Of a stretch of DNA of 64,000 bases, positions 10,304-52,639 are shown piece by piece. The notes under the pieces were generated by a model. It did no database searches. It was not told the DNA's origin and saw nothing but the letters and a program-made list of their open reading frames with translations. Source of the stretch: Macrostomum lignano (taxonomy: Eukaryota); the NCBI GenBank assembly GCA_002269645.1, contig NIVC01000129.1, positions 604,755 to 668,754 on the forward strand, written 5' to 3'. The position numbers were made by a program, and so were the translations under genes. Positions within the stretch are counted from its first letter, which is position 1; every line of letters begins with the position of its first letter.

Positions 10304-13300
10304 GTGAGCACTTTTCTATGAGTTCGATGGGGATTTTTCGGGGCTAATGGTGGTAAAAAGATCGAAAAAATTTAAGAATCGCTCTTCAGTAGCGAGGTAG
10401 GGTTTTTTATTCCTAACCTCAACTTTTAAGGATGAATGGTTCTACATAGTGGCTACGATCTCTTTTGTCACCACTGGTCCTTGAGTGATTTACCTGTGGC
10501 TTTTTGTTTTTCCGAGGTGGAGCTTTGGAGTTTTGGATCGGGTAAGTTTAGCAGAGTAAGTACCAAACTCACCCCTCGTACCATTCAGCGAATGCTTTGA
10601 ATAGCTTCGTCGATGCTGCAGGCAGCCAAGATGCTTATTTATGATATTTTCAATTTTTGTTACAGTTGGTTGAGTCTGTTTTTTCTCAGAAATGTTCCTT
10701 GTTTCGTTTGAATATCAGACGTGATTTATCTTTTTTCAATTTCTAATAATACTCGAAAGGCAAGCGCATTGTAAATGATAAAATATTTCGAATTAATTTT
10801 TTTTATCTGATAAAGCAAATTTCTTAGAGAACCACTTATTTCTTTGTACTTTCCACTCAATTCAGGTTTTGTCATTATTTCAATGGTTTTTGCTAGAATT
10901 GTTTAATCAACCTACTTATTAGTAGCATAGTTGCGCAATGGTTGCATAGTGTTTAAAATATTGTTTGCAGAATTATAAGAAACGCTTAATTTTGTCTTGT
11001 CTTGGTGCATTTGAAAAATAGACGTAACAAAGCAGCAGTAAAATGCATACTTTTATGTTATCTATTCTTCGATACTTCCCAGAAAGTCTTAATTACTTTG
11101 CATGGGTGAACCCACTGACTGACTGACTGACTGACTGACTGACTGACTGACTGTGACTGTGAATGAGGTGAGGTGAGGTGAGGTGAGGTGAGGCAACGGA
11201 GGCGTGAATGAGCTGAACCGAAGAGACGGATGGTGTCAATTGCTTACTAGCATTGCTGAAGCGGAACTCCACGCTTTTCGAGCGCATGCAGCCAAAGAAT
11301 CGATTTGCTCGCGAACCGTGGGGAATTGGGAGAAGTTGCCAGACTCCTGTCTTCACACGTAAATGCATACTATGCACACAAGTTCAACTCGAAACATGAG
11401 CAGGCAAACACGCTGGTATCGCACGAGCGTAAATACTTCAAGTATGTAGCTTGAATGTACTTTTAAGTGACGTTTTTTATTTGATACTTAAGGTAGCAAT
11501 TGAAGAAACAGGAAGAAATGGTCAGTAACAAACAGTGGCAAAAAAATCTGCTGAACAAAATCACAGTTCGAGACTATCGCAGCAAATTTAAATCGATATT
11601 GAGAGACAGAGAGTTAAAATAAAATCTTTTCTTACTTTTAAAAACGGCGGACTAAAGTCTGTTTAATAAATAGTCAGAAGTACTGTCATACCGTCATACA
11701 CAAGAGAGGCACAGATGTCCGTGATGTCAGCCTAAGTCTAATAACGTCTAGCTCGTATCTCTAGCAAAAAGGGCAACTCGTTCCAACTTACCAATGAAAA
11801 CTTACCATATCTGGCAGTGTGCCAAGCCGCTAAATTTCATTCAGGCCTCCATAAAAGAAGAGACTTACCAGTGCAATACGGTCGGGTAGAATTCGACTGC
11901 CAGACGGCTGTGAAGTTCGGCCCAGCGGTGCAGTTGAGCAGCACTGAGCCCGGAGAAGACGCATTCTCCCGGCACACGAAGGCCACCTGGTCTCCGATGA
12001 GGTACGGCCCGGTTGCCGTCTCGGCCAGGGCGAAAGCGTTTAGAGGGCCGGCCAGCACGCTGGGATCGATCCCGGGACCGAAGTGGCTGTCCGGACAGAC
12101 GACCAACTGGCAGTTCATGGAGCCGCCGGCGCTCCACTGGGGGCCTGGATTTAAAAATGAAAATGTTGGCTCACGTGGCCGCATTTCAGTTTGTCAAGAC
12201 TGGGATAACCCAGACACGGAAATCGCGGGTAGTTATAACGTAAATTTGCAACTCTCGTCATAAACTAGGAGCCTTCACGACCATAAAAATTTGAAGGACT
12301 TTTAGCAGTAGAGCATCAAATTTCATCGTCTGAGCACACGTACGCCGTGATAAAACAAAGTAACTGATAATTAGACGAAAAATCCTACAGCTATTATAAG
12401 CAACATGCATTATCAGTCAGAGAACATACCTAAAACACAAGTAGCCGTCCGGGAGCTCGCGTACGCGTCTACAAACCGGCAGTTGGGCCAGCACCTCACT
12501 TCCACGGTGCTGTTCACTGGCAGGTACACCTGACCGTCTCCCGTAGTCACGTTTCCCAGGTTGTTGCTGGGCACGGCTGTAGATCGAGTCAGGTTGGTAG
12601 GTAACAGACAGGGCTTCGGCTGGCACAGAGTCTCCGATGTCGGCAGCAGCAGCTGCCGGAGCACCGTCCAGTCACCGGCGGTGCAGACCGCCTGTAGGAG
12701 GAACTGCGAGTCGTTCTGTAGACTGACGTTCGCCGCCAGCGGAGCGAAGGCGTTCGAAAAACAGGTGATGTTGGCGACTCGGTCGGGATCCGTGTAGGAG
12801 CTGGTGGGGAAGTCGACCAGTCCGAATCCAACCAGATGCGCCAAGAGACTTGTTGCAGTGCTCTGCAAGAGGTTCAGAGATGGCTTTTTATTGAAAAAGA
12901 CTGTAGTTCATTGAATAATTATATACCGGTATCTAGAACGAGATTGCCAAGATTGGTGTGTCTTCTTTTCCAAACGACCACTTCAAGTCACAAATTAGAA
13001 GCATCGTGAAAAGCTACTCACTGCGGCAGCTGAAGGCCACATTTGAGCCGACGCTGCGCCACACTGCCGCAGGCGGATCTCCGTCTGACAGTCCGCACAC
13101 GGCCAGCTCGCTGCTGCCCGGCATGGCAAAGTACGGCTCCTCGCAGCTCAGCCGCACCAAACTTGTGTAGGGCAGGTGCGAGCTGTTAGCAAAGTTGAAC
13201 GATGCATTGATGACGGTCATGCGAGCGGCCTGAGGCTGCAGCACGACGGCATCCGGCTGTGAGCAGTTGAGCAGCTCGCACGGACCGGGAACGTCCGGCT

Positions 13301-14409
13301 CCCAGCGGTCTCCCAGCCTGCAGAAGATGCTCAACCGCCGGTTCTGCGTCGTCCGAACGAAGCCGGGCCGGCACTCGTAGCTGAGGCTGTCGTCGACCTG
13401 CACTCCGGAAGCCGGCAGACCCGTCTGCAGCTCCTGCTCGAGGTTCAGCGAGCTGTACAGGCTGGAGTTTCCCAGTCCCGGCGGCAGACTCGAGCAGGCG
13501 GTCGGTCGGCAGTTCAGGTGGGTGAACGAGGTCCAGCTGCTGTTGATGCAGCTGATGACGAAGCTGACAGATCCGTTGGGCAGGCCGCCGACGCTGTAGT
13601 TTGTGTTGCAGGTGAAGGCGAGGCTGGCGCCCTCCCAGGAGGTGTTTCCGAGGGTGGCGTTGGCCTGCGAGTTGGCCACGGTCGGAGGGACGGAGACTCC
13701 GCCGCAGTATCCGGGGCTGCAGTCCATGGTGACGGGGCTCCAGCTGCCGCCAGGCATGCAGGAGGCGGTCTGGCTGGAGCCTGTGAGACCGGATTCACAG
13801 GAGATGTGGATTTCGTCCCCGGGTCGGAATGTTCCGTTCGACAAGAGGTGCGTCAGCAGCTGGCTATCAGTGCTGTTGTAGGTGACGCCCTTTGTGGTGA
13901 AGCTGGTGATAGTTGCGGTGTCATTCGGGTAGACGGGCATCTGGGTGCACGGCAGCGAGACGCAGGTCGGGATTTCGCTGTCCCAAACGGCATCCTGTTG
14001 AATCACAGGCAACAAAATTAGCTCAGTCTAATGCTTGGTATAATAATGGAAACTCATTTGACTATGCACAAGTTTTGATCTTTTTCCACTTTTCTCCCAT
14101 TAAGTTTATCCTACGAGATATAGCGCTTGTGTACAGTATTGGCGCGTGAAATACTTATGTAGCATGTTACCTGAATGTAGTAAACGTCATTCAGCTGTTT
14201 TACCTGAGTGCATCGCCTCACAATGCTGTTATTTTGCTCGGCACCGACGAACACAAAGTTGGGAGCGCAAGTGTATTCAATGTGGTGAAACGGCAGCTTC
14301 TTCAGCTGCAGCTCCGCAGCGGAGAGCGAGCTGTTCCAGGAGGCGCTGACGAGATGCCTCTCCGTCAGCTGGTCGTCAGAGTGCGGACTTGGGCAGGTCA
14401 TGGCTGAAG
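7756..14409. repeat. Large inverted duplication: arms about 7756-9735 and 12433-14409 around a diverged centre
   Basis: Mirror coordinates sum to 22165 (8150+14015, 9151+13014); ORFs in all frames are identical in the two arms. Confidence 0.97.
11114..11193. repeat. Adjacent (ACTG)n and (TGAGG)n microsatellites
   Basis: Visible at 11114-11153 and 11164-11193. Confidence 0.95.
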
Positions 14410-17400
14410 TGAATTGGAAATTATGGCTTAAGATAACTGTTGTTTGGATTATGCTTTGAATTGGCGTTACAAACTCTGTTGTTTACTAATCATGAGAGAC
14501 TTGAATTTTACGAGTACGAAATTAATGATTTTTAACGTTTGCATGTAGCATGGGTAACTTCCCAAAATCTCAATATCGGAAAAGGCCTATTGCACTTTTT
14601 TTATAGAAATGTAGTCGTTAAGCTTTATTTGCTGTCACGCAAGAAAATAGTGTAATGTAGAACAGATGAAAATATTATACTAGATAAACTAGATAAATAA
14701 GAGCCAGAATAGTGGTTCCGACCTGTACATAGGACAGCCACCTCTTCATCAAAGTCCTCCTCCTTGACTTCTTTCGGAGCACCATCGTCCCATTTGGAAA
14801 CCACTATCAGTCCTTTCGTCTTATCGTGATCAAGGATGTCTTTGTTGAGACTGGACCGGCAGTGAATTCTCGGCAAGCAGAAGGACTGATGCCTCCAGTT
14901 GGTCATGCCAGTGTCGAACATGAGCGCCAACATCAGGTGGTCTCCTTCGTTCACAGATTGGCTATGCAGGATAGACTTGTTCAGGAATTCCCTAAATGAA
15001 ATAAAATCGATTTGCACAGTGTCACTCCGATGCCTGCGATTTGAATGTTTGATCAGAATGAACATACAAAGCATTGGCATTTACATCACCTGTGTGGAAT
15101 GCTTTGAATCGATTTGTTGGCGAGACGTCTGCCAAAACTTGATAAAAATATAAAAGACAGAAATGTGACTTTGAGCAACAGAACGAGCTGTCGTTTGGCG
15201 TGAGGTTTTTGTGATAAAAATGATGAGGTAAAATACGAGGGTAAGATAAAAAGTACACTAAGAATCCAAAGGTAGAAACGCACCACATCTTTTGTCGCTT
15301 CTCTGCACTCTCAGCTTGAGCAGGCCGACCGGTCCGACTCTCGCAAAACAAGTTATATTTGTCTTTTTCGTACTCGTCCTCCAGTTTCAGTTTTTGAAAA
15401 TGAACGCAATAGCTTTGATTCACTAGCGGCCCTTCGTCAATGCTGGCAACCAATGTGACAGGGCTGCAGGTGCGGCTTCCAGTTGAGCCGTTGGCTGCAA
15501 ATTTTTCGAATAATCAGATTTTAACTCTTGTGTAGCTAAACAGAACAGTGTGGCAGAAATAGGAAACTGACTTCAGGTAAAAGTATCAGCCGCCTACATT
15601 AAATGAGATTGGTCTGTTAATATCATTCTCTATCCTCCATCCCTATCACCATATTCGATCATTTGCAGTAGTTCTGTCACCCTCACTACGATAGCTTTGT
15701 CACCCTCACTGGGGTAGCTTTGTCACCCCCACTGCGGTAGCTTTGTCACCCTCATTGCAGTAGCTTTGTCACCCCCACTGCGGTAGCTTTGTCACCCTCA
15801 TTGCAGTAGCTTTGTCACCCCCACTGCGGTAGCTTTGTCACCCCCACTGCGGTAGCTTTGTCACCCTCATTGCAGTAGCTTTGTCACCCCCACTGCGGTA
15901 GCTTTGTCACCCTCATTGCAGTAGCTTTGTCACCCCCACTGCGGTAGCTTTGTCACCCCCACTGCGGTAGCTTTGTCACCCTCATTGCGGTAGCTTTGTC
16001 ACCCCCACTGCGGTAGCTTTGTCACCCTCATTGCAGTAGCTTTGTCACCCCCACTGCGGTAGCTTTGTCACCCCCACTGCGGTAGCTTTGTCACCCTCAT
16101 TGCGGTAGCTTTGTCACCCCCACTGCGGTAGCTTTGTCACCCTCATTGCAGTAGCTTTGTCACCCCCACTGCGGTAGCTTTGTCACCCCCACTGCGGTAG
16201 CTTTGTCACCCTCATTGCGGTAGCTTTGTCACCCCCACTGCGGTAGCTTTGTCACCCCATTGCAGTAGCTTTGTCACCCCCACTGCAGTAGCTTTATCAA
16301 CCTCATTGCAGTAGCTTTGTCACCCCCATTGCAGTAGCTTTGTCAACCTCATTGCAGTAGCTCTGTCATCCCCATTGCAGTAGCTCTGTCACCCCCATTG
16401 CAGTAGCTCTGTCATCCCCATTGCAGTAGCTTTGTCACCCCCATTGCAGTAGCTCTGTCAACACCATTTCAGTAGCTCTGTCATCCCCATTGCAGTAGCT
16501 TTGTCAACACCATTTCAGTAGCTTTCGCGCTCTAGGAATTATTTTCTACTCATTGAATAATTAAGCAACTTGAGAATAAGCGGCTACTCACGCAGTGGAA
16601 AGTACTCGCACATCGGGTACATGTGCACATCGGTAGACACGGCCGTGTACATAAACGAATTCTGAGTTTGCTTCAATGCGATCAGATTGATTTTTTTAGT
16701 AACGGATTTTTTATCCCACTGCCAAGCTGGCGGGGTGAAAGTCGGTCCGAACATGTTCCAGGCCAGGGGCACCGGGTCTCCTCCATAATAGTAATAGGGC
16801 TTGTAGGTCCAGTTGGTTGCCAGCTCTTCGTCGTCCACAATTATTCTGACTGTGGCGCTGTTGCAGTTTCGTATGAATTAAAAGTATATAAAGATATTGA
16901 TTTGGTGTAATAATTGAAAAAAAATCTTCTAAATAAGTCTTCTAAAAAATCCAAACTAACAGGGATTGATCGGTCGGTTTCGTTCAGGAATACGACGGGG
17001 ACTTCTACTGTCAGCATTTAAAAACGACCACTTTTGCTAAGCTTTCCCGAGGCAACTAATATTTTTTGTGAGAAGTAGCTTGACTGAAGTTTTTGATAGT
17101 TATATATTGTAGCTCGTAGTACTATTGTGTTGGTTGTTGGTCTTTGTCGTCCATTTTTGGCTCTCCGGTCAGACCCCAATAGACGCAAATTGAAGTAACA
17201 CCATTTGGTGCGTTTTAACGACTTTTTAATCACTCAGGAGGGGAAGCTCGCAAAATCTTGGTGAAAAAAGTATGAGGCTCGTTCAAAAGCACTGTCTGTG
17301 GCCAAGCCTTTATACAAATAATTAAGAACTGAATTAGTTAACCATTTTTCCGACCATCAAACGCAAGTGTGAATTGACCAAGGACCACTAGAAGTCAATA

Positions 17401-26665: not shown

Positions 26666-27895
26666 TCAATCTTTAGCCTGACCGGCCGTCAGCACGATCT
26701 GTCGCTGCCGCTGCAGTCTGAGCTGCTCCGAAGTCATCAACGATGAGCTGCTGCGCGATTTGTTAAAGCGGCGAATGGCGTTCGCCCTCTGGCTGTTCAA
26801 CGTGGCGGCGCCACCAGCCTGGTAGGAGGAGCCGCGCAGGCCGCCAGTGTATCCCAGCGGACCCCGAGTTTGCAGAGAGCGGCGCAGAACGGCTGAACGA
26901 AACGCCCAGTTGGTCTTCATGTAGACCGCAAAGTTACACGTGGAGTCCAGATTGATGCACAGGTTCGACACCTCAACGGCGTAAAACATGAAGGCGTCCC
27001 AGCCCGAGCTGTCGTTCTTCGTCATGATGCCGAGTAAGACGGTAACGAACATCGGCATCTCCAGGCACACGAAGACTCCAAGCAGCAGCTGGATCATTCG
27101 CGTGGCCTTGCAGTGGGCTCGACTTGACGCGAGTCCGGAGCGCCTCTGATGAGCCCGGAGGCCCAGTGTCATCGCCGCGGTGGCGACGCCGACAATCAGG
27201 ACTGGCAGCACGGCCTGGCAGAACACCGTGCCCAGATAAAACTCGCCGTAGTGCGGAAACGGCGGTTGGAAGTCCCTGCCGACGATACGCAGCTGCCCCT
27301 CACTGAGGCACAGATAGTAAAGCTCCTGAAAGGCCTTCGGCGCGCTGAGGATTGCAGCCGTGACGCTGATAATAACGAATGCCGCTATCACAGTTCGAGG
27401 CCCGCAGCGACGGCCGGTGTTGCGCGAGAACGGGCGAACCACGGCTTCACAGCGGCTAACAGCGATGAGCACGACGCACCAGTTTCTGGCTAGCAGGGCG
27501 GCGTTGGCCAGCGACCAGGTGACGGCCAGAAACTGCACGAGTCGGCGTGCCGCCTCCGGCGAGTTGTACACTATATCGTTGCGGCGAATCTCCAAAGCGA
27601 TACGACTGGCCTCAACGCTGGACATCGCGAAGCTCGCAGCGACCTCTGTGAAGGAGAGCAGAAGCAGCAGCAGGCGGATCAGGCGGCCTTTCTGCTTTCG
27701 CTGGCACAGGAAGATAACGGCAGAGAGACTATTGAGGACCAGATTCAGGGCGCCGAGTGCCACAAATACCGACTTGAATAGCAGCGCATTCGGCCCAACT
27801 GGATCGGCGCTGCCGGCAGTTCCGTCGCAGGAGACATTGCTGCTGTTGCTTGAGTTGTCACCTGGGCTGAGCAGCACTAGCTGGAACATTGTCAT
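26666..27895 (-). CDS. Intronless rhodopsin-like (class A) orphan GPCR, peptide-receptor-like, 409 aa
   Basis: Seven hydrophobic segments; N-terminal sequons (NSS, NVS); TM3 RNW...SRCEAVxxP (DRY equivalent); TM5 LP; TM6 VCLEMP; TM7 DSTCNFAVY. Confidence 0.92.
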   Translation of the reverse strand: MTMFQLVLLSPGDNSSNSSNVSCDGTAGSADPVGPNALLFKSVFVALGALNLVLNSLSAVIFLCQRKQKGRLIRLLLLLLSFTEVAASFAMSSVEASRIALEIRRNDIVYNSPEAARRLVQFLAVTWSLANAALLARNWCVVLIAVSRCEAVVRPFSRNTGRRCGPRTVIAAFVIISVTAAILSAPKAFQELYYLCLSEGQLRIVGRDFQPPFPHYGEFYLGTVFCQAVLPVLIVGVATAAMTLGLRAHQRRSGLASSRAHCKATRMIQLLLGVFVCLEMPMFVTVLLGIMTKNDSSGWDAFMFYAVEVSNLCINLDSTCNFAVYMKTNWAFRSAVLRRSLQTRGPLGYTGGLRGSSYQAGGAATLNSQRANAIRRFNKSRSSSSLMTSEQLRLQRQRQIVLTAGQAKD

Positions 27896-28096
27896 AATTC
27901 AAGTGCGCCTCTTCTGTTTCTTGCTGCTGTTGGGAAGCCTCGGCTGCAGAATTTGAGCTGCGGCAATGCAGCGATTTCCAGCCAATCCAAGGCCGACCCG
28001 GGGAGTCTCACCTCAAAACGACTTGAAGATTTGAGATCTCTAACTGCAGCTGCTCATCTGCAGGTAGCCAATCGGTGTTGGATTCGATATGGCTGC

Positions 28097-28160
28097 GGGA
28101 GACCTGACAAGACTGCGGGAGACCTGACAAGACTGCGAGAGACCTGACAAGACTACGGGA
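28097..28160. repeat. Three 20-bp direct repeats (GGGAGACCTGACAAGACTGC) upstream of the GPCR
   Basis: Visible. Confidence 0.85.
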
Positions 28161-29910
28161 GAAGATGCAAAGAGAGGCATCTGATTGTGGCTGGAACAAT
28201 TTACATTTTTCGCTGTCTTTTTTTACATATCGGTCAGGTGCCATCAGAACCCGATACCCCCAGAGGTATCAGAACCCCCATCAGAAGCGATTTTTCTAGC
28301 CGATAGGAACCGCCTTCGGTCCGAATCTGTGGCAGGTAATCAAGGCGCGTTCACACGCCCAGCAATCTAACCTTCAAATCGCGTGCACACGTACCAAAGA
28401 TGGATCAAGCGAAGAGAAAAGCGGTTTACCTGACCCTTTATCGGCTACTGTGAGTAGAAATTGAAGTATACTAAAAGAGAAAATTTTCAAGCTATCTGAT
28501 TTTTTTAAATTTGTTGTTAAGCCCTGTTGTTGTTACTATAAGTAATGAATTCTTGTAAAAGGAGCTGAAGGAATTTCTGACAGCTGTAGCAGAAACAATT
28601 TAGCGCTATTTTCTTATTTTCAAGCCTATTTTTACATTTCCGAATGTGCTCTAACTACTCACGTATGTAATCGAATTAACTTTAGTTCAAATCGAATTCC
28701 AACCAGCTGTTCCAGTGCAACCCTTCTTCAATACTTCCCGGGCATACAGTTCTGAACTGATGGAGAAGGGGCCGGCGTTCGTTTTGGGAGCCATATTGCA
28801 TAGTCTCATGATAAATTTATGCATTTATGAATAAAATGACACGTGGTCGGTACCATGTGTTTCTGGGGAGCCTGAAGTAAGTACAGTGGTGGCATGCAGA
28901 AGATCACCAGAGTACAGCGCCTACGCATCAGCCAAGGGGTTAATGCTGTAAGTTGTGCTAGAATTCGACATGCCATTGTGTGTGTCTAGATTTTTTGCGT
29001 CATAGCGTGTGTGTGTAATGGATTTGATCTGGTTAAGTATGTCAACAGAGCCGTTCACGCAACAGTATAACAAAAAACAATCCACTCAGGAGGATGTGAG
29101 CATGGTGGACTAGCTTGTGGACGATTCTTGTATTAAACATAAGGTCGTAAAAATATACGCACACTAAAGTTACGCCTTCTTTACACAACTAACAGATTCG
29201 TGTAGTTAATTAAAAGATTCGAAATTCTCGGAATCTGCTCAGTGTATTTTTGGTGCTAGCAAGCAGAACAACAACAGTTCGCTGGGAGCGTGTGCATTGA
29301 TAAGGTATCGGTGTGAAGTTAGACTAGATCCATGGAAATCTGCATACATAATGTATCATATTTATCATTAGCAGCAAAATCTTTCAGCAAATTGCAATGC
29401 AGTGACCGCAACAATAGTGATTGTGAAAAGATATCTTCTTTTGCAAAAATAATCTATAAAACCTATCAGAGAGTTTATCGCAGCGGAAAATGGAATAAAA
29501 AAATTGAATTTTTCCAAGCAGTTTGCTGATATTTCGGAGAGTTAAGATGCATGCTGGAAAGTTCCGTGATCGAGCTCTGAAGCAATGTGCATGCGCATTT
29601 AGCAAGGCAAAACATCGATTGTGCAGACGCCAAAACAGGCAATTAAAATAATGATTTTTGCATATGACAGATCTAGTTGTGCATGTATGCTAAACATGTG
29701 GTTTAGGGGCAAAAAACTACAGGATTCCGATTTACTCGTACAATACAAGTGAATTATCTATAGAGTAAGAAGATCGAACAGAAAAAGCTCTCAGTCACAA
29801 CAGATTGGAATATTAAATCAGAAAGGACAAATGAACAAATTTTAGAATGTAGACGTTCTCACAGCAATGACCTTGCAACTCATCAAACAGCTGACTGCCG
29901 CGACTCTCGA

Positions 29911-32160
29911 TTACATCCGAACCAAAATGGTGCCCCGCGAGGCCAGCGGAATCGTCTCGGCAGTGCAGCCGTTGGTAGTGCGATGGTTGCAGGCGGTGGT
30001 GTAGTTCCGGTTGAATCCGGCGGTGGTTCCACGACCGTCGGTGCCGCGGCAGCCGCCGCCTCCACCGGCTCCGCCGCCACCGAGGGGGCCACCGGGAGAG
30101 CTGCGGCTGTCCTGCTTGCGAATGCCCAGCATGCGGCCGGCGGCGTGCAGGAAGCGGCGGTTAGACAGCACGATGATCACCAGGTTGCAGTATGAGTCCA
30201 GGATGATCAGCAGGTTGCCGATGACGCGGCTGAGCACTACACTCTGCGTCTCCTCCCTGGAGTCCAGCAGGGCCAGCACTGTGGTGGGGATCTCGCACTG
30301 GGCAAACACGAACGCCACTAGTAGAGTCCGAACTACAGCTCTAGTTGACAGGTCGGCCCGGCTGGAACTGTTGCTGGGTATTGATGAGCCGCGTCTGAGC
30401 AGCTTGAATGAGATGGCTACAGACATGAGCACACAGAGGCCGGCTGGCAGGGGGCCCTGCAGTGCAAAGATGATGGAGTGCACAATGTCATGGTTCTCCG
30501 ACAGCGAGACGGCGTAGCGCGGCAGGGACTCCTGACTGACGTACATGCTGAATGCCTCCGCCGAGAACCTGGAGCAAATGAGTGAGACGCTCAAAATGTC
30601 AAGTTCTAGTTAAACGAAGTAATAATTCTAGCAACCGTAAGGCATGAAACATCAACTTTCTAACGCTCGTACTTTTTCAACCCTGGAAGCGCTTTGAAAA
30701 GAAACTCTCAAGATACCGTAAATGCTGCGTAGTCAATTTTGTAACTCTAAAAAACATAATCAATTTGAGTCTACATATTAGTATTTTTGTCCCATCGAGC
30801 ATGTCAACACATCACATCAACTTTGATTTTGTCATCTGGAATTTGAACTTCATTGCGACTTTTGGAATTTCAACATTTCTATTAATGGTAAATATTTTTT
30901 AAATTTGAACTGATGCCAGATCGCATCCTCGTCTTCAATTTGGCGTATTGAACTCGGACCCAGGATGCCAAACGACACTGCAGTTTCTGACGCTTAAAAT
31001 CCAGCTTTAAGAAAAATGAATTCGCATATTTTTCATCCACTGGGCGGAGTTCCTCTACCTATGCAGTCTCTTGGATCAAAGTCGTCTCTTTAATTAGACG
31101 CAATTTCGCTGAAAAGCCGGATGCTTGCAAGACCTTTCATTATCTTTCATTAGGAAGCTGGGGGCTTATTCGTGTCATTTCCGCGCCAGGCAAGTTTCAT
31201 TGTCGAACACAGTGGCAGCAGGATAATTATGAGTTCGCTTCAATGCGAATGAGCAATTTTTGCAGATTTTTTCTGAAAAAAAGTTTACGCATCATGAGAC
31301 CTTGAAATTGAACGATCCCTGACTGGCACACTTTTCGACGCTGCTACACTACACGAGTAGGATTACTGGGATTTTTCATCTACGCCAAACTAAATCCTAA
31401 AAGATTTGAGTTTTGATACAGAGAGGGAGCTTAGAAACTGCAAAAATGGGACACTCTCTGTCCCTGGGGGTTCGCCATCTCGAATTTTCGCGCACACAAA
31501 CCCCAATAAAACGACAATGCTCTTTTCGAGACTATAAGATTAAGGCAGTTGCTATATGAATGCTTGCCACTTGGAAAGCCTTGACTTAAAGGGTTCGTAA
31601 AACTACAGTGGGACACCTTGGCAGGCGATCCATCATTCTGCGTACCGAGACGCCACGGGCGCTACGACCAGCAGGTAGCAGGACAGGTAGGCCAGCCGCA
31701 CCCGACGGCTGGTCAGGGCGGCCCTGGCTCGCATCGGGCTGAACACGTGCGCGGCGGTGAGTGCAGCTTTCACCACAATGCAGTAGTTGCGGACAAACAG
31801 AAAGTAGTTGGTTAGGTAGAATGTCACCATCAGCGGCAGAGGATAGGCGTGGTGATCCTCACTGTGCAGCGAACTGTTAGTTAGTGCTGAATCATTGTGC
31901 GGCGGTCGCACCAGTTCGAGTAGGCCGAGTTTAAAGATGAGGCATAGGCCGCCGCTGAGACAGCAGAGGGACTCGGTGACCGTCAGGACTAGAAATCCGG
32001 ACAGCACGGCAGCCGTGTGCCTGTCGTGCTTGCTGATGCGATGAAAGATGGCTGAGCCGAATGCGAAAACCGCGGCAGCTACGAAGCAGAGAGGCGTCAT
32101 GGCTGCGTAGCTGGCGTACTCAAGCAGCCAGGCGGAGTACAGCTTGTCTGGAGCTGGCAT
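29911..32160 (-). CDS. Two-exon class A orphan GPCR: exon B 32160-31646 (TM1-4) + exon C 30568-29911 (TM5-7, C-tail)
   Basis: Phase-2 donor CG|GTACGC joins acceptor TTTGCTCCAG|G to give APVASR-FSAEAFSMY. TM5 GPLP, TM6 QCEIP and TM7 LDSYCNL parallel the neighbouring GPCR. Confidence 0.85.
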
Positions 32161-32809
32161 TCTGTCTGCAAAGCTGATCTCCACTGCTGATATGGCGCTC
32201 GAGCCTAGAGGCTAATCAAGACGCAGCTCTCCGCCTGCAGTAGCGTGAGCCATTTTTTATCGAATGGCGACAGTCTGGCATCAGCCGGCTTAAAAATGAG
32301 ATGGCGGCAAGGCAATGGCTGCCTCTGAGCTTGTCTGATTCGAGGAAATAGCCCGGGGAGCGGATGAATAGAGAGGTAGAGAGGGCTGCTTTCACAGCGG
32401 ATAAACTCACCAGGAGCACAGATGCTCCCGTGAATATTTGCGCTCACGGTTAAGCCTTTCTTTTTCGTTGATGGAATTTAGTCTTAATGTGTCAACGTTG
32501 TTAATCAGAAAGGAATTGCATCGAAATGTTTCTTTCTGGAACGCTCAGTTTGTTGATCCTTGATCTCGATTCCCATCTGAAAAAATGCGATTCTAGAATA
32601 GCAGCTGCATCAGAACTCACAGCTCAATAAAGGATTTCTTCTTTTCTTGGGGACACACTAAACTTGACTAAAATTGAATCGATCGCAATGGAGCTGCCTA
32701 TTTACATTTGTTTGTAAGTATATTTGGCAGAGTGAGTCTGAATCAACAAAAACCTGATTAACCGGATTAATCAGAATCTAACTTTAGTCGGCATGTAAGG
32801 CATCAGATT

Positions 32810-33166
32810 GGGGGGCCGTAGCTCAGCGGTAGCGCAGCTGCTCTGGTGTGCCGCGACCCAGGCTCGATTCCAAGTGCAGCCACATTAATTTGGGGCTGGA
32901 TTGGAATCTTGGCTTGGCTCGCTTGTGCAATTAACGGCCTTGAGAGCCAACCCCCCAAGGCGCAGTGAAGTGTACATGCCTAACGATAATATAAAGTTAG
33001 GGCCGCTGTACACTCCTGTGTGAGTGTGTGCCTGCGTAACGTATCCGCGCGCTTGTATGCCTGCTCAGGGGAGTCGGCGGAATGGGCAGTAATGCCTCTC
33101 GCCGGTTGTGTGCCTATGTCACTTAAATTGCGCCAGGGTGCACACAACCCCCCTGCCTCTAAAAAA
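32810..33166 (+). mobile_element. Full-length tRNA-derived SINE (family 1) with 13-bp TSD
   Basis: A box TAGCTCAGCGG, B box GGCTCGATTCC, A-rich tail, TSD AAGGCATCAGATT at 32797-32809 and 33167-33179; two more copies in the window. Confidence 0.92.
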
Positions 33167-33374
33167 AAGGCATCAGATTCTTTGTCTTACGGTTACAAAA
33201 TTGCTTATAAATGAAGCAAACCTTCCAAAGGCAAAACATTCACCTAATTCACGATAGGTAGCATCCTAATTCACTTTTTTATGGTGGCGCCCACACTTGT
33301 GGCATCCACATGTCGTGGTTTTATGAAGCTACCCTCGCAGAAAAACCCAGAAAACCTGGCAGTGCTCTTCTTAC

Positions 33375-33916
33375 CTGATGAAGGTCGGCGCCGAGGCAGC
33401 GAGGTAGCAGGCGATGAAAGTCGAGCGCAGCCGCTGACCAGTCAGCATCACCCGGGACTTGAGCGGCATGGCCACCTGCACCAGAGTGAGCCCGGTCTTG
33501 GCCATGATGCAGTAGTTGCGAGCGAACAGCAGGAAATTTGTAGCGTAGAAGGACACCAGCAAGGGCAGGCCAAAGTAGACTCTGGAACCGCCGCCAGCTC
33601 CGGTTCGGTTGTCGGAGCCGTTCCCAAGAGTGACATTCCAGTATAGTTGATCGCACATGGCCCGCTTAGCAAGGATTTGGTCAACGTGCAGCACAAGGCA
33701 GAGGCCGCAGGCCATGCACACCAGAGTCTCCGTGATGACGATCGCCAGGAAGCCGGTCAGGCCGGCGCTGCGCCGTTGTCGCTGCATTCGGCGGAAAACG
33801 CAGGCACCGAAGGCGAAAACCGCGGAGGCCAGAAAGTCTAGCGGGGCGGCAGCAGCGTAGGGGATCAACTCCAGGTGGAGCAGCGAGCAGGCGGCTGGAG
33901 ACGGCGTTGCAGACAT
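33375..33916 (-). CDS. GPCR exon A (TM1-4), paralogous to exon B, with no private TM5-7 exon
   Basis: Intact 180-codon ORF, about 40% identical to exon B by eye. Strong acceptor TTTTCCTCTTCTCCAG directly before the ATG; phase-2 donor AG|GTAAGA at the same aligned position as the exon B donor. Confidence 0.8.
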
Positions 33917-35500
33917 CTGGAGAAGAGGAAAAACTCTGTTCATTAGCCAAATTGTTGTGCACGTGTGCGCGGCTGTGGGGGGGGGGGTTCATGAATGCCT
34001 TGAACCACGCCCTCGGCCGGGGCGGGGGCTTTTCTGAATAATAAAATTGACAACTCGTAAAATCATCAATAAAGCTAGCAGATTGCTACTGGACCCCGAG
34101 GGGCAAAACAGGTGACTGTCGCTTCACGATCCCAGGTAGGATTCTGTTCACGTCTTGATTACTTTGGGGATTGTGAAGAAAATTGGCTAAGGGGTTGCCC
34201 CAGGGGTTTTCACAAGCATGAAGGCCAACCCGCAAGGAACAGAGAGTGTACATGCTAGACGAACCAGTCAGGGCCCCTGTACATCCAGTGTGGGCGTACA
34301 GTACTAGCGCGATTGTATGTGTTCAGGAGTCAGGAGAATGGGCGCAGAATTGCCTCACTAGGTAGAATTGTGAATATTTTTATACTAGACCCCGCGGCAA
34401 ATGGCTTTTATATCGAAGTGTGCGGAGATCTCAATCGCCATGAAAACTTATAAAAGCCACAAGGCAAACAAGACTGCCAGAAACGCTTCGAATTGTTCTT
34501 TTGTAATCAACACTCGCGAAGCTCTCGCGGCAATCGTCAGTCATGCATCGATAGGCACTGTTGAACTTGAAATACGTTTAGTATGATACAAAAGCTTTGA
34601 ATTCAGATGATCAATCAAGTCAATTATCGGAGCGGACTAATCCAAGCTCGGCAGGTTTCGTGACGCGGATCGGTGATTTTCTGTGCTTCTATATAAGGAA
34701 AGCATTAATTTGCTCTAAAGAAAGGTGAGCCCTAGAATGATTTCTAGAATGCCGTAGGCACTAGCAAATTGCCGCTATTCCTTTTCGATGAAGAGACAAA
34801 AGCATCGAGCAATGGAGAGATTTTTGCTTTTCAACCAGAAAAACAGTCTGTAGGAAACCCGCATTGTTGTTTCAAATAGAAAAATTCATGAAAGCGAAAA
34901 GAGACAGCTGAATTCTGTTCTGATGCAGCTTATTGTATTCTATTACAATGGAGCGCCATTGCGAAGGCTCAAGGTAGACGCAGCTAAAAATCATGAAGTA
35001 TTTTTTAACAAAATTCCCTTTTTCTAGTGTGAGGCGGAGGACACAATATGATCGCATGCGTGAGATGCCTTGTTGAATGAGTCTCAATATCTTGTCCCAG
35101 TATTTCTACAGTTAAAAACAGCCTGTCAGCAATCAGCATGCAATTTGGCCCTCAGAAATTATTTTGAAAAACCACTTTACACTTGATGAAAAATCGGATA
35201 CACCGATGCAACGCTTAATTTGACACCTTTGTTTGCACGCACGGCTTGCACTGAGAGTGATTCTGTATTTTAGTTTGTCAGATTAAACTCAATTTCTGAT
35301 TTTCACTCAATGGGGACATTGTAAAAACCTTTACATAGACACTGCTACGAGCTACTACGCTATTTTGTTTTACGCTCATACACTCATTCGTTTTCTAAAA
35401 GGATTTCCCGGTAAATTGCTTTATTGTCAATTTCAAACAATGACCGGTAATTGCTTGAATGTCATTGCCTTAACGTAAATTACCATAGACATTTTGAACA

Positions 35501-35790
35501 ATTACTGCTCATTCCGCCGACTCCCCTGCGCAGGCAAACAAGCGCGCGGATATGTACGCAGTCATACGCACAGGCACTCGCACAGGAGTGTACAGCGGCC
35601 CTAAATTTATTTATCGTTAGGCATGTACACTTCATTGTGGCTTGGGGGGTTGGCCCTCAATGCCGTTAATTGCACGAGCAGAGCCAAGCCAAGATTCCAA
35701 TTTAGCCCCAAATTAATGTGACTGCACTTGGAATCGAGCCTGGGCCGCTGGCACACCAGAGCCTGCGCTAAGCCACTGGGCTGCGGACCC
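35501..35790 (-). mobile_element. SINE family 1 copy, 3'-truncated
   Basis: Reverse complement matches 32811-33100 including the tRNA-like head. Confidence 0.9.
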
Positions 35791-36699: not shown

Positions 36700-37624
36700 T
36701 AGTATCTGTTACAGCTTGAACTGAATCGTCATAGCATCAATTATGTCAGAAAATGATTGAACACTATTTACTCATTTTTCAAGAGTGTCCATGCGATACT
36801 TTTGGCTATGAGTAGTCACTACATAATTTGAGAACTATTTTATACGCGAACGCATCTCATTAGAGTTGATTGTCGGATATACGCTCGTAGCAGCTGCCTA
36901 ACAAGAGCAGAGCTGTGATTACGAATAAGCACACAATGTCATCATCATATGAGTGCACAGAGAGGACAATTTTAGTAAATGGCAGTCAGTTGATTCCCGC
37001 ACTGGGCTCAGGCACTAATAATATGTCTCATAGCCAGCACTCACGCCAATCTCTTTTGGACAGTCGTTGCTGATAGCATAATTACAGTACAGCTATACAA
37101 GGCCCGCTTGCATAGTAAAAAAGTGATATACATTTCAGAGGCAGTGAGTGGCTTTAGTGCGACTGTCCATATACTGTACTCAAAAATACTTTGCTGTGTA
37201 TAGCTTGCTGTCACTTGGCACTTGAACTGAGCTGAGCACATGCTGTGTAGCACAGCTGTCTTTGTGACTGGAAGTTTTTCGTAAGTCATGGCTAGAGGAC
37301 ACTAAAGGCAAAAACTATTCTTTTAAAAAAATCGCTACCGAAATTCCACCTCTGACTAAAAAATATGATCTGCATAGCAAGGACTCTGCTAACTTATACA
37401 TTTTTGTATTGCAGTTGAACGATTATGCGTTCTTTAGTGGGATCCAACTTGCAATCAAACCTGAGACTGCATGGGTCATTAATGCGCTTTACGTGTATAA
37501 ACATTTCAAGCTAAACTTGAACCTTAGACTATCAATAAAATGCTGTATCTGCAGTTGAAGCTAAATCTTATCGTTTACCACATGAAGAGGAATTTACTGT
37601 TTTCCTGTTTCCTTTTTGGGTGTT

Positions 37625-38623
37625 CCTGTCGCTTGGTAGATGTCCCTGTCTCTTGGTGGGGCCCCTGTCTCTTGGTGGACGCCCCTGTCTCTTGGTGGGC
37701 GCCCCTGTTTCTTGGTGGGTGTCCCTGTCTCTTGGTGGGTGTCCCTGTCTCTTGGTGAACGCCCCTGTCTCTTGGTGAGGCCCCTGTCTCTTGGTGGGTG
37801 TCCCTGTCTCTTGGTGGGGCCCCTGTCTCTTGGTGGGTGTCCCTGTCTCTTGGTGGACGCCCCTGTCTCTTGGTGAGGCCCCTGTCTCTTGGTGGGTGTC
37901 CCTGTCTCTTGGTGGGCGTCCCTGTCTCTTGTTGGGCGCCCCTGTCTCTTGGTGGGTGTCCCTGTCTCTTGGTGGGTGTCCCTGTCTCTTGGTGGGCGTC
38001 CCTGTCTCTTGGTGGGTGTCCCTGTCTCTTGGTGGGTGTCCCTGTCTCTTGGTGGGTGTCCCTGTCTCTTGGTGGGTGTCCCTGTCTCTTGGTGGGTGTC
38101 CCTGTCTCTTGGTGGACGCCCCTGTCTCTTGGTGGACGCCCTGTCTCTTGGTGGGTGTCCCTGTCTCTTGGTGGGGCCCCTGTCTCTTGGTGGACGCCCC
38201 TGTCTCTTGGTGGGTGTCCCTTTCTCTTGGTGGGGCCCCTGTCTCTTGGTGGGTGTCCCTGTCTCTTGGTGGGGCCCCTGTCTCTTGGTGGGTGTCCCTG
38301 TCTCTTGGTGGGTGTCCCTGTCTCTTGGTTGGTGTCCCTGTCTCTTGGTGGGCGTCCCTGTCTCTTGGTGGGTGTCCCTGTCTCTTGGTGGGTGTCCCTG
38401 TTTCTTGGTGGGTGTCCCTGTCTCTTGGTTGGTGTCCCTGTCTCTTGGTTGGTGTCCCTGTCTCTTGGTGGGTATCCCTGTCTCTTGGTTGGTGTCCCTG
38501 TCTCTTGGTTGGTGTCCCTGTCTCTTGGTGGGTATCCCTGTCTCTTGGTTGGTGTCCCTGTCTCTTGGTTGGTGTCCCTGTCTCTTGGTTGGTGTCCCTG
38601 TCTCTCGGTTTGTGTCCCTGTCT
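37625..38623. repeat. 20-bp (19-bp variant) minisatellite CCTGTCTCTTGGTGGGTGTC, about 50 units
   Basis: Visible; ORFs 37568-38731 etc. are repeat translations. Confidence 0.97.
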
Positions 38624-45754: not shown

Positions 45755-47802
45755 TTAAGCGTCTAGTTGACATACGCTATAGACGGATGTCTTTCGCTCA
45801 TAAACGGACGCCCAGAGCAGTCGCCGCTTATCGTTTCCATGGCAACTGGCTGGCGCAAATCCGTGACGTTTCAACAGGAACGAGCGCAGCGACGCCTGCA
45901 GGTCTGAGCAGACGGCTCGGACAAGCCGCAGCCGGCCGCTCGGCACGGCATGTCGCAGGGCGGCGCGGAGCAGCGCCGAGCCGACGCCTCGACGCCGGAG
46001 CGACCGCATGACAACCAGGTGGGTGAGCTCCAGGACTGGCGGCTGCTGCTGGCTATCGGCGTCAACTGGCGGAGCAGACGGCGGCGAAGGCAGCTGGCGA
46101 AGGGCCAGCACGCCTACAATGTTGCCGTTGCTGCTGAGGGCGGCCACCCACAGCCGGCTGTCGGAGAGACTGGCGGCGCGCAGCAGGCTCAGGCAGGAGG
46201 AGGCTGTCAAACATACAAATATATATGCTTAGAATTCATTTATCGCTACATATCGGGGACTGAAGTTGCAACTATGGGAAGTTCAATGCCTTTAATTACT
46301 GCGGTAAAGTGCAACGCGATACTGTAAGTTAAGAGATTGTACTAGCTCAACCTCTCCCAGTCTGAAGAATCCCCTTACTCCCCCTGCATGAGGAACCGCT
46401 TCTCCCTCCCTGAAGAATCCCCCGTGTCCCTGGACTCGCTCCACCCTGAAGATTCTTCTCTGTGTCCCTGAAGACTCGCTTCTCCCTGAAGATCCTCCTC
46501 TGTGTCCCTGAAGACTCGCTCCTCTGTGTCCCTGAAGACTCGCTCGACCCTGAAGATTCTCCTCTCTGTCCCTGAAGACTTGCTCGACCCTGAAGATCCT
46601 CCTCTCTGTCCCTGAAGACTTGCTCGACCCTGAAGATTCTCCTCTCTGTCCCTGAAGACTTGCTCGACCCTGAAGATTCTCCTCTCTGTCCCTGAAGACT
46701 TGCTCGACCCTGAAGATCCTCCTCTCTGTCCCTGAAGACTCGCTCCTCTCTGGAGAATTTCCCTCTCTGTCCCTGAAGACTCGCTCCTCCCTGAAGAATT
46801 CCCCTCTCTGTCTCTGAAGAATTCCCCTCTCTGTCCCTGAAGACTCGCTCCTCTGAAGAATCCTCCCCTGTCCCTGAAGACTCGCTTCTCTCTGAAGAAT
46901 CCTCCTCTCTGTCCCTGACGACTCGCCCCTCCCTGAAGAATCCTTTCTGTTCGTGGTTCTTTAAGAATGGCCCCAATTTTACTGTCTGAGAGAATATTTC
47001 AGTTGACCTATTAAAAAATTTACGCAGTGAAACTTACAACTTCCATGTGTGTGAGATTCAGTTATTACTGAAAGTAAAAATGCAGGGATTTGACAAATTA
47101 AAAAAATAGAAATCTAATCGTGCTTCATTTAAATAAATATTTCGGAATACGCCCAAAGCCAGAAAGAAGGAAATTAAGGGTGCCTATTCCGCTCACACAG
47201 GAGTTGTTTATGTGGCCTGCCATGAACACTTTGTGTGGCTCATTGTAGGCCTAAAAAACTAATAGTCAGATATTTGGCCACATTTCTACAGTAAGTAGAG
47301 TAAACAAAACATACATGCGCAACGATAATTAGCTGACAAGGCGTTTAGCTCAAAAAATACAGTCATAGTTACTCCTGCTGTTTACCCACAATAATATTAA
47401 TTTTTGCTCAGGTTTTTTATATGCAAGTTACACGGCCAGTGTAAATCAGGAGGTTGCGCATGTATGTTAACAAAAGTTAAAGCAACACTGAGCAGGCAGC
47501 TCACTAGGAAGGCAGCCGCTGCCGCTATCGCACAGTCTGGAGCCGCAAGCGATGCACACTAGCAGCAGCAGCATCAGCACAATCGCTGCCAGTAGTTCCC
47601 AGCAGATGCCCAGAGCCAGAGAATTGTGAGACACAGCGCCGCAGGCCATCAGACAGGTGAGGCTTAATCGAACCTGGTCAGTGGCCAGCAGGCGGGGAGC
47701 AGATTCTAAGAAGCTCCATAGGATGGCCCGCCGCATGAGAGCGACAACACTGACCTGATCGGCGGCCTCATAGGCGCGAATTCGCAGGCGGTGGCGCGCC
47801 AT
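45755..47802 (-). CDS. NAT8/camello/NAT14-like membrane GNAT N-acetyltransferase, 2 exons (about 248 aa)
   Basis: Exon 1 47802-47505 (RIRAYEAAD..., hydrophobic segment, phase-1 donor GTGAGC). Exon 2 46203-45755 (acceptor TTTGACAG; LWVA...IVG, LELTHLVV, acetyl-CoA motif A RRRGVGSALL, HGF). Confidence 0.85.
46360..46945. repeat. About 40-bp composite minisatellite (CCCTGAAGA-based) in the GNAT intron
   Basis: Visible; ORF 46347-46976 is its translation. Confidence 0.93.
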
Positions 47803-48094
47803 GAGATTGAGTTTAAAAATTGTTGATACTTCAAATAAAATACGAAAGCATTGGAAATGCAAAACTTGAAAATAAGGCATTTAGCTTAAAAGCGCAGGGT
47901 GCCAATTAGACAACAGTGTCCAGATTTATGGAATTTGATATGCCATAAGACATACCATGGCACAATAACTTAGGTTATAGCTTAGAAGGACAGACTATAA
48001 AGTAGAGTTTTGCCATTACTAAACATTACCCATATCTGTATCCATAGCAATAATAGCCTATCTATATCTAATATCTATATCTACCTTGTTCATA

Positions 48095-50101: not shown

Positions 50102-51469
50102 AGTTAGAATAAAAGTTATACAAAGCAATTATGACATAATTAATTTCTTTGGTAGTATTAGTCTCAATTAAAGTTAACAATATGGATATGCAATGAAAAT
50201 CAAGTCTTATGCCTATTCTATGCTTCCATACTAATAGCATTATTATATTTTCAATTTTATAATGCATGTCAAGTCAGATTCACTATTTAGTAATTAGTTA
50301 TAATTGTAAAAATTAATGCAATTTTGATCAGAATTAGAATTTAACCAGTCAGTTTTTTTCAAACATTTTATAATAAATTTAAAGTTGAAAAGTCCACTAG
50401 ACCTTTGCAAAAACATAACTTCTTATATTTAATCTTTTTAGCATTGAGCAGTTTCTTAGACTTAAGGGGCCTAGTTGCAACATATATTATCATAGGAAAA
50501 TTTCCAATTAAATAGCATACTTTTGAAGAATAGTACACTAGTACACTAGCACAATTTTTGTTTAAATCAATGATGTAGGACCAAGACTGCCACACACCAA
50601 GACCACTACACTTGAGGAGCTAGGGGAGGAGGAATTTGGCTCAATATATTATTGAATGGTACTAGAGAGGAACCTATGAGAGGAATAGCAATGCTAGAAG
50701 ATTGGTAGCTCCCCCTCAATACCAATAAGCTAGCCAGTAATAGTTGTGGCAGTCTTAGTCATGCACCAAATCAATTAGGGCCTAGGGTCTACATCCAATC
50801 CAAATATACTAAATCTCTAATATTTGTATGCTTGCTTGCTTGCTTGTCCTCCAATATACTAAAAATGAAAATCTTGCTTGCTTGTAATCAATTAGAGAAA
50901 AAATGGCTTAACCGATTTTCATGAGACTTGCACTGTTCGATCAGAAATTTTCCCGTGACGGTACATGCATCGTGGCTAAGAAATTGCTTGATGCTAAAGG
51001 CATTAAATATTCAAAAAACATGCTTTTTGCAAAGGTCAAGCAAACTTTTCGACTTGAAATGCATTGTAAGAATGCTAGAGAAAAAACTGACTGGTTGAAT
51101 TCTGATTCTGAAATTGCATCATAACTGAATTGTAACTCCGACTTGAATTGAAAATGCAGTGTGGAAGTGTAGCACCAGACTTGATTTAAATTGCGTAACC
51201 ATATTGTTAACTGATACTGACTAACTGAGAAACTGATTATGTCATAACTGCTTCGTGTGATTTACTCTATGCTTGGATTTTAAAGTGTTGAATTATATAA
51301 GTGCAAAATTTGATGTTATCAAACTGATGAGAGCTAGCCTAGACGTGAACAAACTGAACTGCTAAATGCAGCGACGATGGTTTGAATTTACATAGAGTGG
51401 AATTTTTTTAAGTAAAGCTTTTCAACGTCAGGAAAACTAAAAGACTTTTTAAAAAGAAGTGTCATGTAA

Positions 51470-52620
51470 AAATCATAGAAGTGTCATGCAAACAATCATA
51501 GAAGCGTCATGTAAAAAAATCATAGAAGCGTCATGTAAACAATCACTGAAGCGTCATGTAAACAATCATAGAAGCGTGATGTAAACAATCATAGAAGCGT
51601 CATTTAAAAAAATCATAGAAGCGTCATGTAAACAAGCATAGAAGCGTCATGTAAAAATCATAAAAGCGTCATTTAATCATAGAAGCGTCTTTTAAAAAAA
51701 TCATAGAAGCGTCATGTAAACAATCATAGAAGTGTCATGTAAACAATCATAGAAGCGTCATGTAAACAATCATAGAAGCGTCATGTAAAAAATCATAGAA
51801 GCGTCATGCAAACAATTGTAGAAGCGTCATGTAAAAATCATAGAAGTGTCATACAAACAATCATAGAAGCATCATGTAAACAATCATTGAAGCGTCATGT
51901 CAAAATCATAGAAGCGTCATGAAAAAATCATAGATGCGTCATGCAAACAATCATAGAAGCGTCATGTAAAAATCATAGAAGTGTCATGCAAACAATCATA
52001 GAAGCGTCATGTAAAAATCATAGAAGCGTCATGTAAACAATCATAGAAGCGTCATGTAAAAAATCATAGAAGCGTCATGTAAAAATCATAGAAGTGTCAT
52101 AAAAAAATCATAAAAGCGTCATGTAAAAATCATAGAAGCGTCATGAAAAAATCGTAGAAGCGTCATGTAAAAAATCATAAAAGTGTCATGAAAAAATCAT
52201 AGAAGCATCATGCAAACAATCATGGAAGCGTCATGCAAAAAATCATAGAAGCGTCATGTAAACAATCATAAAAGCGTCATGCAAACAATCATAGAAGTGT
52301 CATGTAAACAATCATAGAAGCGTCATGTAAAAAATCATAGAAGCGTCATGTAAACAATCATAGAAACGTCATGTAAACAATCATAGAAGCGTCATGTAAA
52401 CAATCATAGAAGTGTCATGTAAACAATCACAGAAGCGTCATGTAAACAATCATAGAAGCATCATGTAAACAATCATAGAAGCGTCATCAAAAGATCATAG
52501 AAGCCTCATATAAAAACTAATGGAAGTGTCATTTGAGAAATCATAGAAGCGTCATGGAAGAATAAAATAAGCGTCATGTAAAAATCAAAATAAGCGTCAT
52601 GTCAGACATGAAAGAAGTGT
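51470..52620. repeat. About 23-bp minisatellite (AATCATAGAAGCGTCATGTAAAC), about 50 units
   Basis: Visible. Confidence 0.96.
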
Positions 52621-52639
52621 CATGTAAAAATTAAATGAA

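Follow-up and report, generated by a model that had tools for sequence, protein, structure and literature searches.

The window analysed here, the whole stretch of 64,000 nucleotides (64 kb) of contig NIVC01000129.1 from Macrostomum lignano, harbours on its minus strand a locus predicted to encode a seven-transmembrane (7TM) receptor. The locus consists of two exons for transmembrane helices (TM) 1 to 4, here called A and B, and one exon for TM5 to TM7, called C. We read it, with a probability of roughly 60%, as one receptor gene in which two alternative 5′ coding exons are joined to a constant exon, the front exon being chosen when the 5′ end of the transcript is formed. Exon A or exon B would supply the start codon, helices 1 to 4 and a private glycosylated extracellular loop 1 (ECL1), and exon C would supply helices 5 to 7, helix 8 and the tail. 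Two variable exons and one constant exon form the most economical layout, because A and B bear signs of constraint, their donors are correctly phased, and only one TM5-7 exon is present. A preliminary description of the window had proposed that this one locus makes two receptors. The layout agrees with that proposal as its most economical reading; the splicing of A to C, on which the second receptor depends, is predicted from the exon boundaries.

Reading the minus strand from 29500 to 34400 and assembling the exons reproduced all exon coordinates and frames of the preliminary description. The features of the receptor locus, with a slash at the exon boundary, are the following.

33917..33936, minus strand: acceptor-like site of exon A, ttttcctcttctccag/ATG, with a strong polypyrimidine tract and a CAG that abuts the ATG.
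33375..33916, minus strand: variable exon A, ATG at 33916, 542 nt, phase 2, TM1-TM4, intact open reading frame (ORF); its ECL1 has 35 residues and three N-glycosylation sites.
33369..33374, minus strand: donor of exon A, ATCAG/gtaaga, exon end 33375, near-consensus.
32166..32179, minus strand: acceptor-like site of exon B, cagctttgcag/ACAGAATG, 5 nt 5′ of the ATG.
31646..32165, minus strand: variable exon B, ATG at 32160, 515 nt from the ATG, phase 2, TM1-TM4; its ECL1 is shorter than that of exon A, unrelated to it, and has two N-glycosylation sites.
31640..31645, minus strand: donor of exon B, TCTCG/gtacgc, exon end 31646, weaker than the donor of exon A.
29911..30568, minus strand: constant exon C, acceptor ttgctccag/G at 30568, stop codon 29913-29911; it encodes extracellular loop 2 (ECL2), TM5-TM7, helix 8 and a tail rich in glycine; ahead of TM5 the exon lacks a start codon of its own.

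The donors of exons A and B each leave two bases of a codon, which the first G of exon C completes to arginine. Splicing of A to C gives an open protein of 399 amino acids (aa), and splicing of B to C one of 390 aa. Unspliced read-through meets a stop one codon past the donor of A and four codons past that of B; the exon boundaries look real, because stop codons come almost at once past both donors. The locus has tandem paralogous exons with their own start codons, same-phase donors and a shared exon downstream. It also has the anatomy, known from mutually exclusive cassettes of the ETHR and Dscam type, of adjacent homologous exons with acceptor and donor motifs, whose joint inclusion through the first AG of B breaks the frame. 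This junction of A to B leads to a stop 15 codons beyond it, so that an A-B product would be unproductive.

The AG located 4 nt further (32163-32162) restores the frame, as the preliminary description had noted together with the frame shift at the first AG; both points were confirmed. Its use would join A, B and C into a 571-aa protein of eleven helices (TM1-4, TM1-4, TM5-7), in a topology that is consistent, as four helices bring the chain back outside. However, such splicing must bypass the better-placed AG 4 nt upstream, and A and B keep homologous start codons, which are needless in an internal exon. We know of no precedent for an eleven-helix receptor of this kind, and we find such a product hardly credible.

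Exons A and B align end to end with 38-41% amino acid identity (tblastn E 1e-34). The identity is 48% in TM1, 46% in TM2, 55% in TM3 and 35% in TM4, and falls to 11% in ECL1, which differs in length between the exons and carries N-glycosylation sites in both. The donors fall at the same aligned position, both in phase 2. These results bear out the earlier account of two paralogues about 40% identical with different ECL1s, phase-2 donors at one aligned position, and acceptor-like sites 0 and 5 nt from the ATG. Not counting a short interspersed element (SINE) described below, the A-B spacing is 839 nt, and the B-C intron has 1077 nt. The similar spacing fits an exon duplication. In the origin that we propose, an ancestor of two exons with a phase-2 intron after TM4 would have undergone tandem duplication of its first exon.

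Both front exons look like coding sequence under long-term purifying selection, as judged from their composition and divergence. The GC content at third codon positions is 0.72-0.78 in A, B, C and a neighbouring receptor gene, N (A 0.77, B 0.73), and the introns and flanking non-coding DNA have a GC content of 0.40-0.47. When A is compared with B, the fraction of identical nucleotides is 0.54 at first, 0.65 at second and 0.39 at third codon positions. The nonsynonymous divergence (dN) is 0.56 and the synonymous divergence (dS) about 2, which is saturated (Nei-Gojobori); the duplication is therefore old, and selection on the protein has filtered the changes since. Shuffled versions of A or B are stop-free in only about 1% of cases. 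In an alignment of five family members, A and B keep the residues that are invariant in all five, within the motifs TE (TM2) and RNY (TM3) and at the proline of intracellular loop 2, and exon C the motifs F..E.P (TM6) and N..LDS..N (TM7).

The same evidence bears on the main rival explanation, in which only B+C works and exon A is an orphan partial duplicate. Exon A would then be either the relic of a whole-gene tandem duplicate that lacks its TM5-7 part, or a recently transposed first exon of a paralogue located elsewhere. Such an exon would not be transcribed, would be degraded once spliced into B with its premature stop, or would yield at most a fragment of four helices. The intact state of its 180-codon ORF, start codon, strong acceptor and near-consensus donor argues against this, and so do the codon-position divergence and the kept family motifs, which point to constraint. 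Nevertheless, a recent partial copy would stay intact whatever its divergence from B, and its intactness would then be uninformative on function. With three outgroups, no rate asymmetry between A and B was significant (12 versus 12, 10 versus 8, and 11 versus 5 unique changes). The BLOSUM sums against three outgroups are somewhat lower for A (60/55/37) than for B (77/90/78), which favours an orphan A. Altogether we regard an orphan exon A as unlikely, although it deserves to be taken seriously, and further observations on both sides of it are given below.

Exon C is the only TM5-7 exon found for the two front exons. TM5-7 sequences were searched in the 64-kb window by tblastn, with exon C and the C-terminal half of N as queries (E up to 50), and with a profile hidden Markov model (HMM) of four distinct family sequences, run with filters off on every stop-to-stop piece of the six frames. 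Both searches returned only exon C and the separate, intronless neighbour N. A TM1-4 profile HMM over the same six-frame pieces matched only A, B and N. Neither a second or degraded TM5-7 exon nor extra variable exons were found in the window by tblastn and profile HMM. A weak match to exon B at 54382-54203 was dismissed as chance similarity in non-coding sequence.

The interval between A and B contains one inserted element, which belongs to a SINE family with three copies in the following places.

32810..33168, plus strand: tRNA-derived SINE with a poly-A tail, within the A-B intron and antisense to the gene.
35501-35790, minus strand: further SINE copy.
61894-62091, plus strand: further SINE copy.

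On either side of the SINE of the A-B intron stands a copy of a perfect 11-bp target-site duplication, GGCATCAGATT (32799-32809 and 33169-33179), which suggests recent activity. Members of the family have about 360 nt, and their tRNA-like head was not called by ARAGORN or Rfam. As the insertion is clean and its target-site duplication intact, the interval had 839 nt before the SINE arrived and nothing was removed from it. A loss of an exon between A and B mediated by the SINE was rejected on account of the perfect target-site duplication. The preliminary statement that a single TM5-7 exon lies downstream, and that the A-B interval holds a SINE and no TM5-7 exon, was thereby upheld by tblastn and profile HMM. 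For an orphan exon A, the absence of any TM5-7 remnant from the 839 non-SINE nucleotides and from the rest of the window is unfavourable, and so is the clean SINE insertion. The position of exon A between inverted SINE copies (32810-33168 and 35501-35790) is compatible with a rearranged segment and favours it. Polyadenylation signals (AATAAA or ATTAAA) were detected neither in the A-B intron nor in the 600 nt that follow exon C, and their absence from the intron is uninformative.

An artefact of assembly could produce a similar picture, if two tandem two-exon genes had been collapsed or mis-joined and the TM5-7 exon of A dropped. The window is rich in minisatellites and SINE copies and contains a 2-kb inverted duplication, all of which make it prone to mis-assembly. 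Nonetheless, it contains no Ns or assembly gaps, the A-B interval consists of unique sequence and a SINE with matching target-site duplications, which speaks for a contiguous and correctly joined interval, and A and B, only about 40% identical, would not collapse together. An artefact is for these reasons quite improbable.

The preliminary description had labelled the product a G protein-coupled receptor (GPCR). What stands of this label is a predicted 7TM, class-A-like fold; several sequence hallmarks of the class do not. In Pfam, A+C reaches 19.9 bits and B+C 18.4 bits against 7tm_1, both below the gathering cut-off of 30.5, and no Pfam match to insect receptor families was obtained for this receptor. 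At the DRY position A+C and B+C each read LT, where N and the proteins P0001 and P0002 have SR or FR; the arginine of this position is kept by N, by P0001 and by the planarian receptor GCR101, and is missing in A+C and B+C. TM7 reads N..LDSYCNLVII, with both the proline and the tyrosine of NPxxY missing. The ECL2 that exon C encodes is free of cysteine, so the disulfide between TM3 and ECL2 is lacking.

Structure prediction of A+C against B+C, proposed in the preliminary description, was carried out with AlphaFold. Both models contain seven long helices and helix 8, in agreement with hydropathy, and the N-glycosylation sites fall in the predicted ECL1, as expected of a 7TM protein with an extracellular N-terminus. 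Model confidence is low, with a 5-sequence alignment as input: the predicted local distance difference test (pLDDT) gives 56 for A+C and 64 for B+C, and the predicted template modelling score (pTM) 0.49 and 0.62, respectively. Among the top 50 Foldseek matches in the PDB for each model, nearly all are class A GPCRs, with template modelling scores of 0.45-0.58 for B+C and 0.3-0.46 for A+C, values that come from low-confidence models in both cases. The poorer A+C model is a further point for an orphan exon A.

Homology searches gave little. HMMER of A+C against 1.84 billion representative proteins returned two marginal matches (E 5e-4 and 9e-4). The second of these, GCR101 of Schmidtea mediterranea (Srfc), is of marginal significance, with 20-23% identity. 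It shares TE (TM2), RNW/RNY (TM3), F..E.P (TM6) and N..LDS..N (TM7) with the present receptors, and differs from them in the low identity and in the arginine at the DRY position. Its authors place GCR101 in Srfc, within the flatworm Srf/w "chemoreceptor" expansion (PMC4862687). Neither B+C nor N had a match among 5.8 billion proteins in a word-indexed search, a sequence search of the PDB gave nothing, and a metagenome scan for a 33-mer of exon C found none. A defensible label for the protein is an orphan, divergent rhodopsin-like (class-A-like) 7TM receptor; any coupling to G proteins is at most putative. Its nearest detectable relative would be the planarian Srfc chemoreceptor-like GPCR, on a match of marginal significance.

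The two receptors, A+C and B+C, would differ in the front half with its ECL1 and have in common the half with intracellular loop 3, helix 8 and the cytoplasmic tail. We infer that both junctions are used, and that the choice most probably falls at the 5′ end. Since both A and B begin with homologous start codons, they are translation-start exons and not internal cassettes. The 5′ end would be formed at A or at B by a promoter of its own or by a spliced-leader acceptor. A transcript that starts, or is capped by a spliced leader, at B would hold only the B-C intron and give B+C. One that starts or is capped at A would use the strong donor of A and would have to skip B in order to reach C.

The acceptor-like sites next to the start codons were compared with the motif YTNCAG, which has a density of 2.95 per kb per strand in the window. 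The tract directly 5′ of the ATG of exon A reads gtttttcctcttctccag and fits the motif. A YTNCAG lies 0 nt from the ATG in A and 5 nt from it in B, each with a chance of about 2-3% as estimated from the motif density. The motif also occurs 48 nt upstream of the start of N and 32 nt upstream of the start of an SRRT-like gene. In all four starts examined (33916, 32160 and 27895 on the minus strand, and 59119 on the plus strand) YTNCAG is thus found 0-48 nt upstream, with about 0.15 expected per 50 nt. These hints, from a small sample of starts, suggest that many genes of this genome have introns in the 5′ untranslated region or undergo spliced-leader trans-splicing.

Trans-splice acceptors in Macrostomum have the motif [T/C]TNCAG (PMC8629364), and genes with more than one spliced-leader site amount to 0.2-1.4% (PMC10468722). 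The motif and the multiple sites fit the weak flatworm affinity of the receptor. The idea, raised in the preliminary description, that the DNA is from a flatworm and that the acceptors serve a spliced leader gained slight support from the planarian Srfc relative and the acceptor-like motifs at four starts. The window does not contain the spliced-leader sequence of Macrostomum lignano, and scans of it with Rfam and for tRNAs gave no match.

Several observations weigh against a gene with alternative front exons. If the acceptor of B acts in cis, A-B-C with its premature stop would be the default product, and a mechanism for skipping B would be required. At two introns of a sushi-domain gene in the window, the acceptors inferred from ORF boundaries (cctcttgcag/A and atcttgccag/G) resemble that of B. 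For an orphan exon A this is favourable, as the acceptor of B looks normal for the genome and A would tend to join B and hit the stop. No promoter motif common to the regions upstream of A and B was found, only chance 9-11-mers, and no competing intron-intron RNA pairing was above chance. A Dscam-like pairing of 33176-33203 with 30734-30761, which would loop out exon B, did no better than shuffled controls, 15 of 60 of which equalled it, and unrestricted duplex folding was uninformative. The model of A+C is less confident than that of B+C, though both use the 5-sequence alignment, and no orthologue of the locus was found in the protein and contig collections searched, in which the lineage is not represented. 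The pairwise signal of selection averages both lineages, and is compatible with a recent inactivation of one exon.

One gene with two alternative front exons would have relatives in its design among known systems. The ecdysis-triggering-hormone (ETH) receptor of insects, ETHR, is a rhodopsin-type GPCR whose gene has two mutually exclusive 3′ exons, each for the part from TM4 to the C-terminus (PMC5572281). Similar to ETHR-A and ETHR-B, two receptors would come from one gene here, with about half of the 7TM bundle exchanged via homologous exons and the break at TM4. However, ETHR shares the N-terminal half and varies its 3′ exons, whereas in the present gene the 5′ half varies and carries its own start codons; there is also no detectable sequence relationship between the two. 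Insect gustatory (Gr) and odorant (Or) receptor loci also have alternative long 5′ exons; in Gr genes these number up to 30 and join 3′ exons that they have in common (PMC6307266). Like Drosophila Gr39a, Gr28b and Gr23a and Tribolium Gr214, the present locus has tandem paralogous 5′ exons, which encode the N-terminus and several helices, and a shared exon for the C-terminal helices. The variable part of Gr and Or genes comprises TM1-6 and the constant part TM7, whereas here the break falls after TM4, the variable exons are two, and the fold is class-A-like. Insect Gr and Or proteins, which have no relationship to GPCRs, are 7TM subunits of ion channels. The ETH receptor and the Gr genes are precedents for swapping half of a 7TM bundle, and the earlier view that none was known does not hold.

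The clustered protocadherins and UGT1A are similar to the present locus in their tandem variable exons, all of which bear a start codon and a donor of the same phase, and in the constant exon downstream. Their variable exons have a promoter of their own with a conserved element, and no acceptor. In the present locus, unlike these, acceptor-like sites stand by both ATGs and no shared upstream motif was found. The literature searched yielded no rhodopsin-type GPCR whose first exons are alternatives for TM1-4; the library was incomplete, and this absence does not amount to proof. Confirmation of the splicing would make the locus a new version of a known design, in which the N-terminal half varies, the fold is that of a GPCR, and the variable exons are two. 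The fuller claim, that a class-A-type locus swaps its whole TM1-4 half, with a hypervariable glycosylated ECL1, against a constant half of TM5-7 and helix 8, via alternative 5′ ends and possibly by spliced-leader trans-splicing, seems to us evenly balanced between true and false.

Should this be true, no earlier N-terminal half-bundle swap would have been described for a rhodopsin-type GPCR, as far as the literature searched shows. Production of both isoforms would mean that the two halves, TM1-4 and TM5-7, can evolve and be exchanged as modules, in a natural experiment in 7TM modularity. Two front halves that are 40% identical and bear unrelated ECL1s would both have to pack against one back half. 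They would form a natural test set for the tolerance of helix packing, and for the question of which half determines ligand specificity and which one coupling. The principle of many receptors from one locus, represented by insect Gr and Or genes and the ETH receptor, would also be extended to the N-terminal half of a GPCR fold and to a poorly sampled lineage. Gene predictors would probably annotate B+C alone or a frameshifted A-B-C, and such loci would be easily overlooked in chemoreceptor-like expansions.

The receptor gene nearest to the locus is the neighbour N, used above as a family member.

26666-27895, minus strand: neighbour receptor N, intronless, 409 aa, 2 kb downstream of exon C and on the same strand.

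N passes the 7tm_1 threshold with 36.3 bits and has a weak match to Srw. Its identity with A+C and B+C is about 20%, and it shares with them the TM3 motif RNW/RNY and the TM7 motif LDS..N; N lacks the intron that the A/B/C gene has between TM4 and TM5. As N adjoins this gene, the two form a small cluster of divergent receptors. A 20-nt unit, GACAAGACTGCGGGAGACCT, occurs in three to four tandem copies at 28086-28162, 190-270 nt upstream of the start of N.

The window also contains an inverted duplication of 2 kb (7756-9743 on the plus strand and 12425-14409 on the minus strand), with 98.4% identity and arranged head-to-head around about 11.1 kb. It carries two copies of the multi-exon gene with sushi/CCP domains, of which the first ORFs, of 333 aa (8150-9151 and 13014-14015), do not differ. 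Either a recent palindromic duplication or an assembly artefact could account for it. Long minisatellite arrays are unusually dense (108-1763, 2453-2978, 15664-16525, 37617-38623, 51455-52628 and 62702-63577), with units of 12-33 nt repeated 26-104 times, and yield spurious long ORFs in several frames.

An N-terminal exon at 59119-59775 (plus strand), continuing to about 61000, is presumably SRRT/ARS2-like, an assignment made by eye from its resemblance to the human protein. It gave neither a Pfam domain nor a word-indexed homology match, for which low complexity is the probable cause. The ORF at 45755-46210 (minus strand) encodes a GNAT acetyltransferase domain (Pfam Acetyltransf_1, E 4.6e-11) and probably belongs, as a single exon, to a larger gene; an ORF that looks related is located at 47467-47880 (minus strand).

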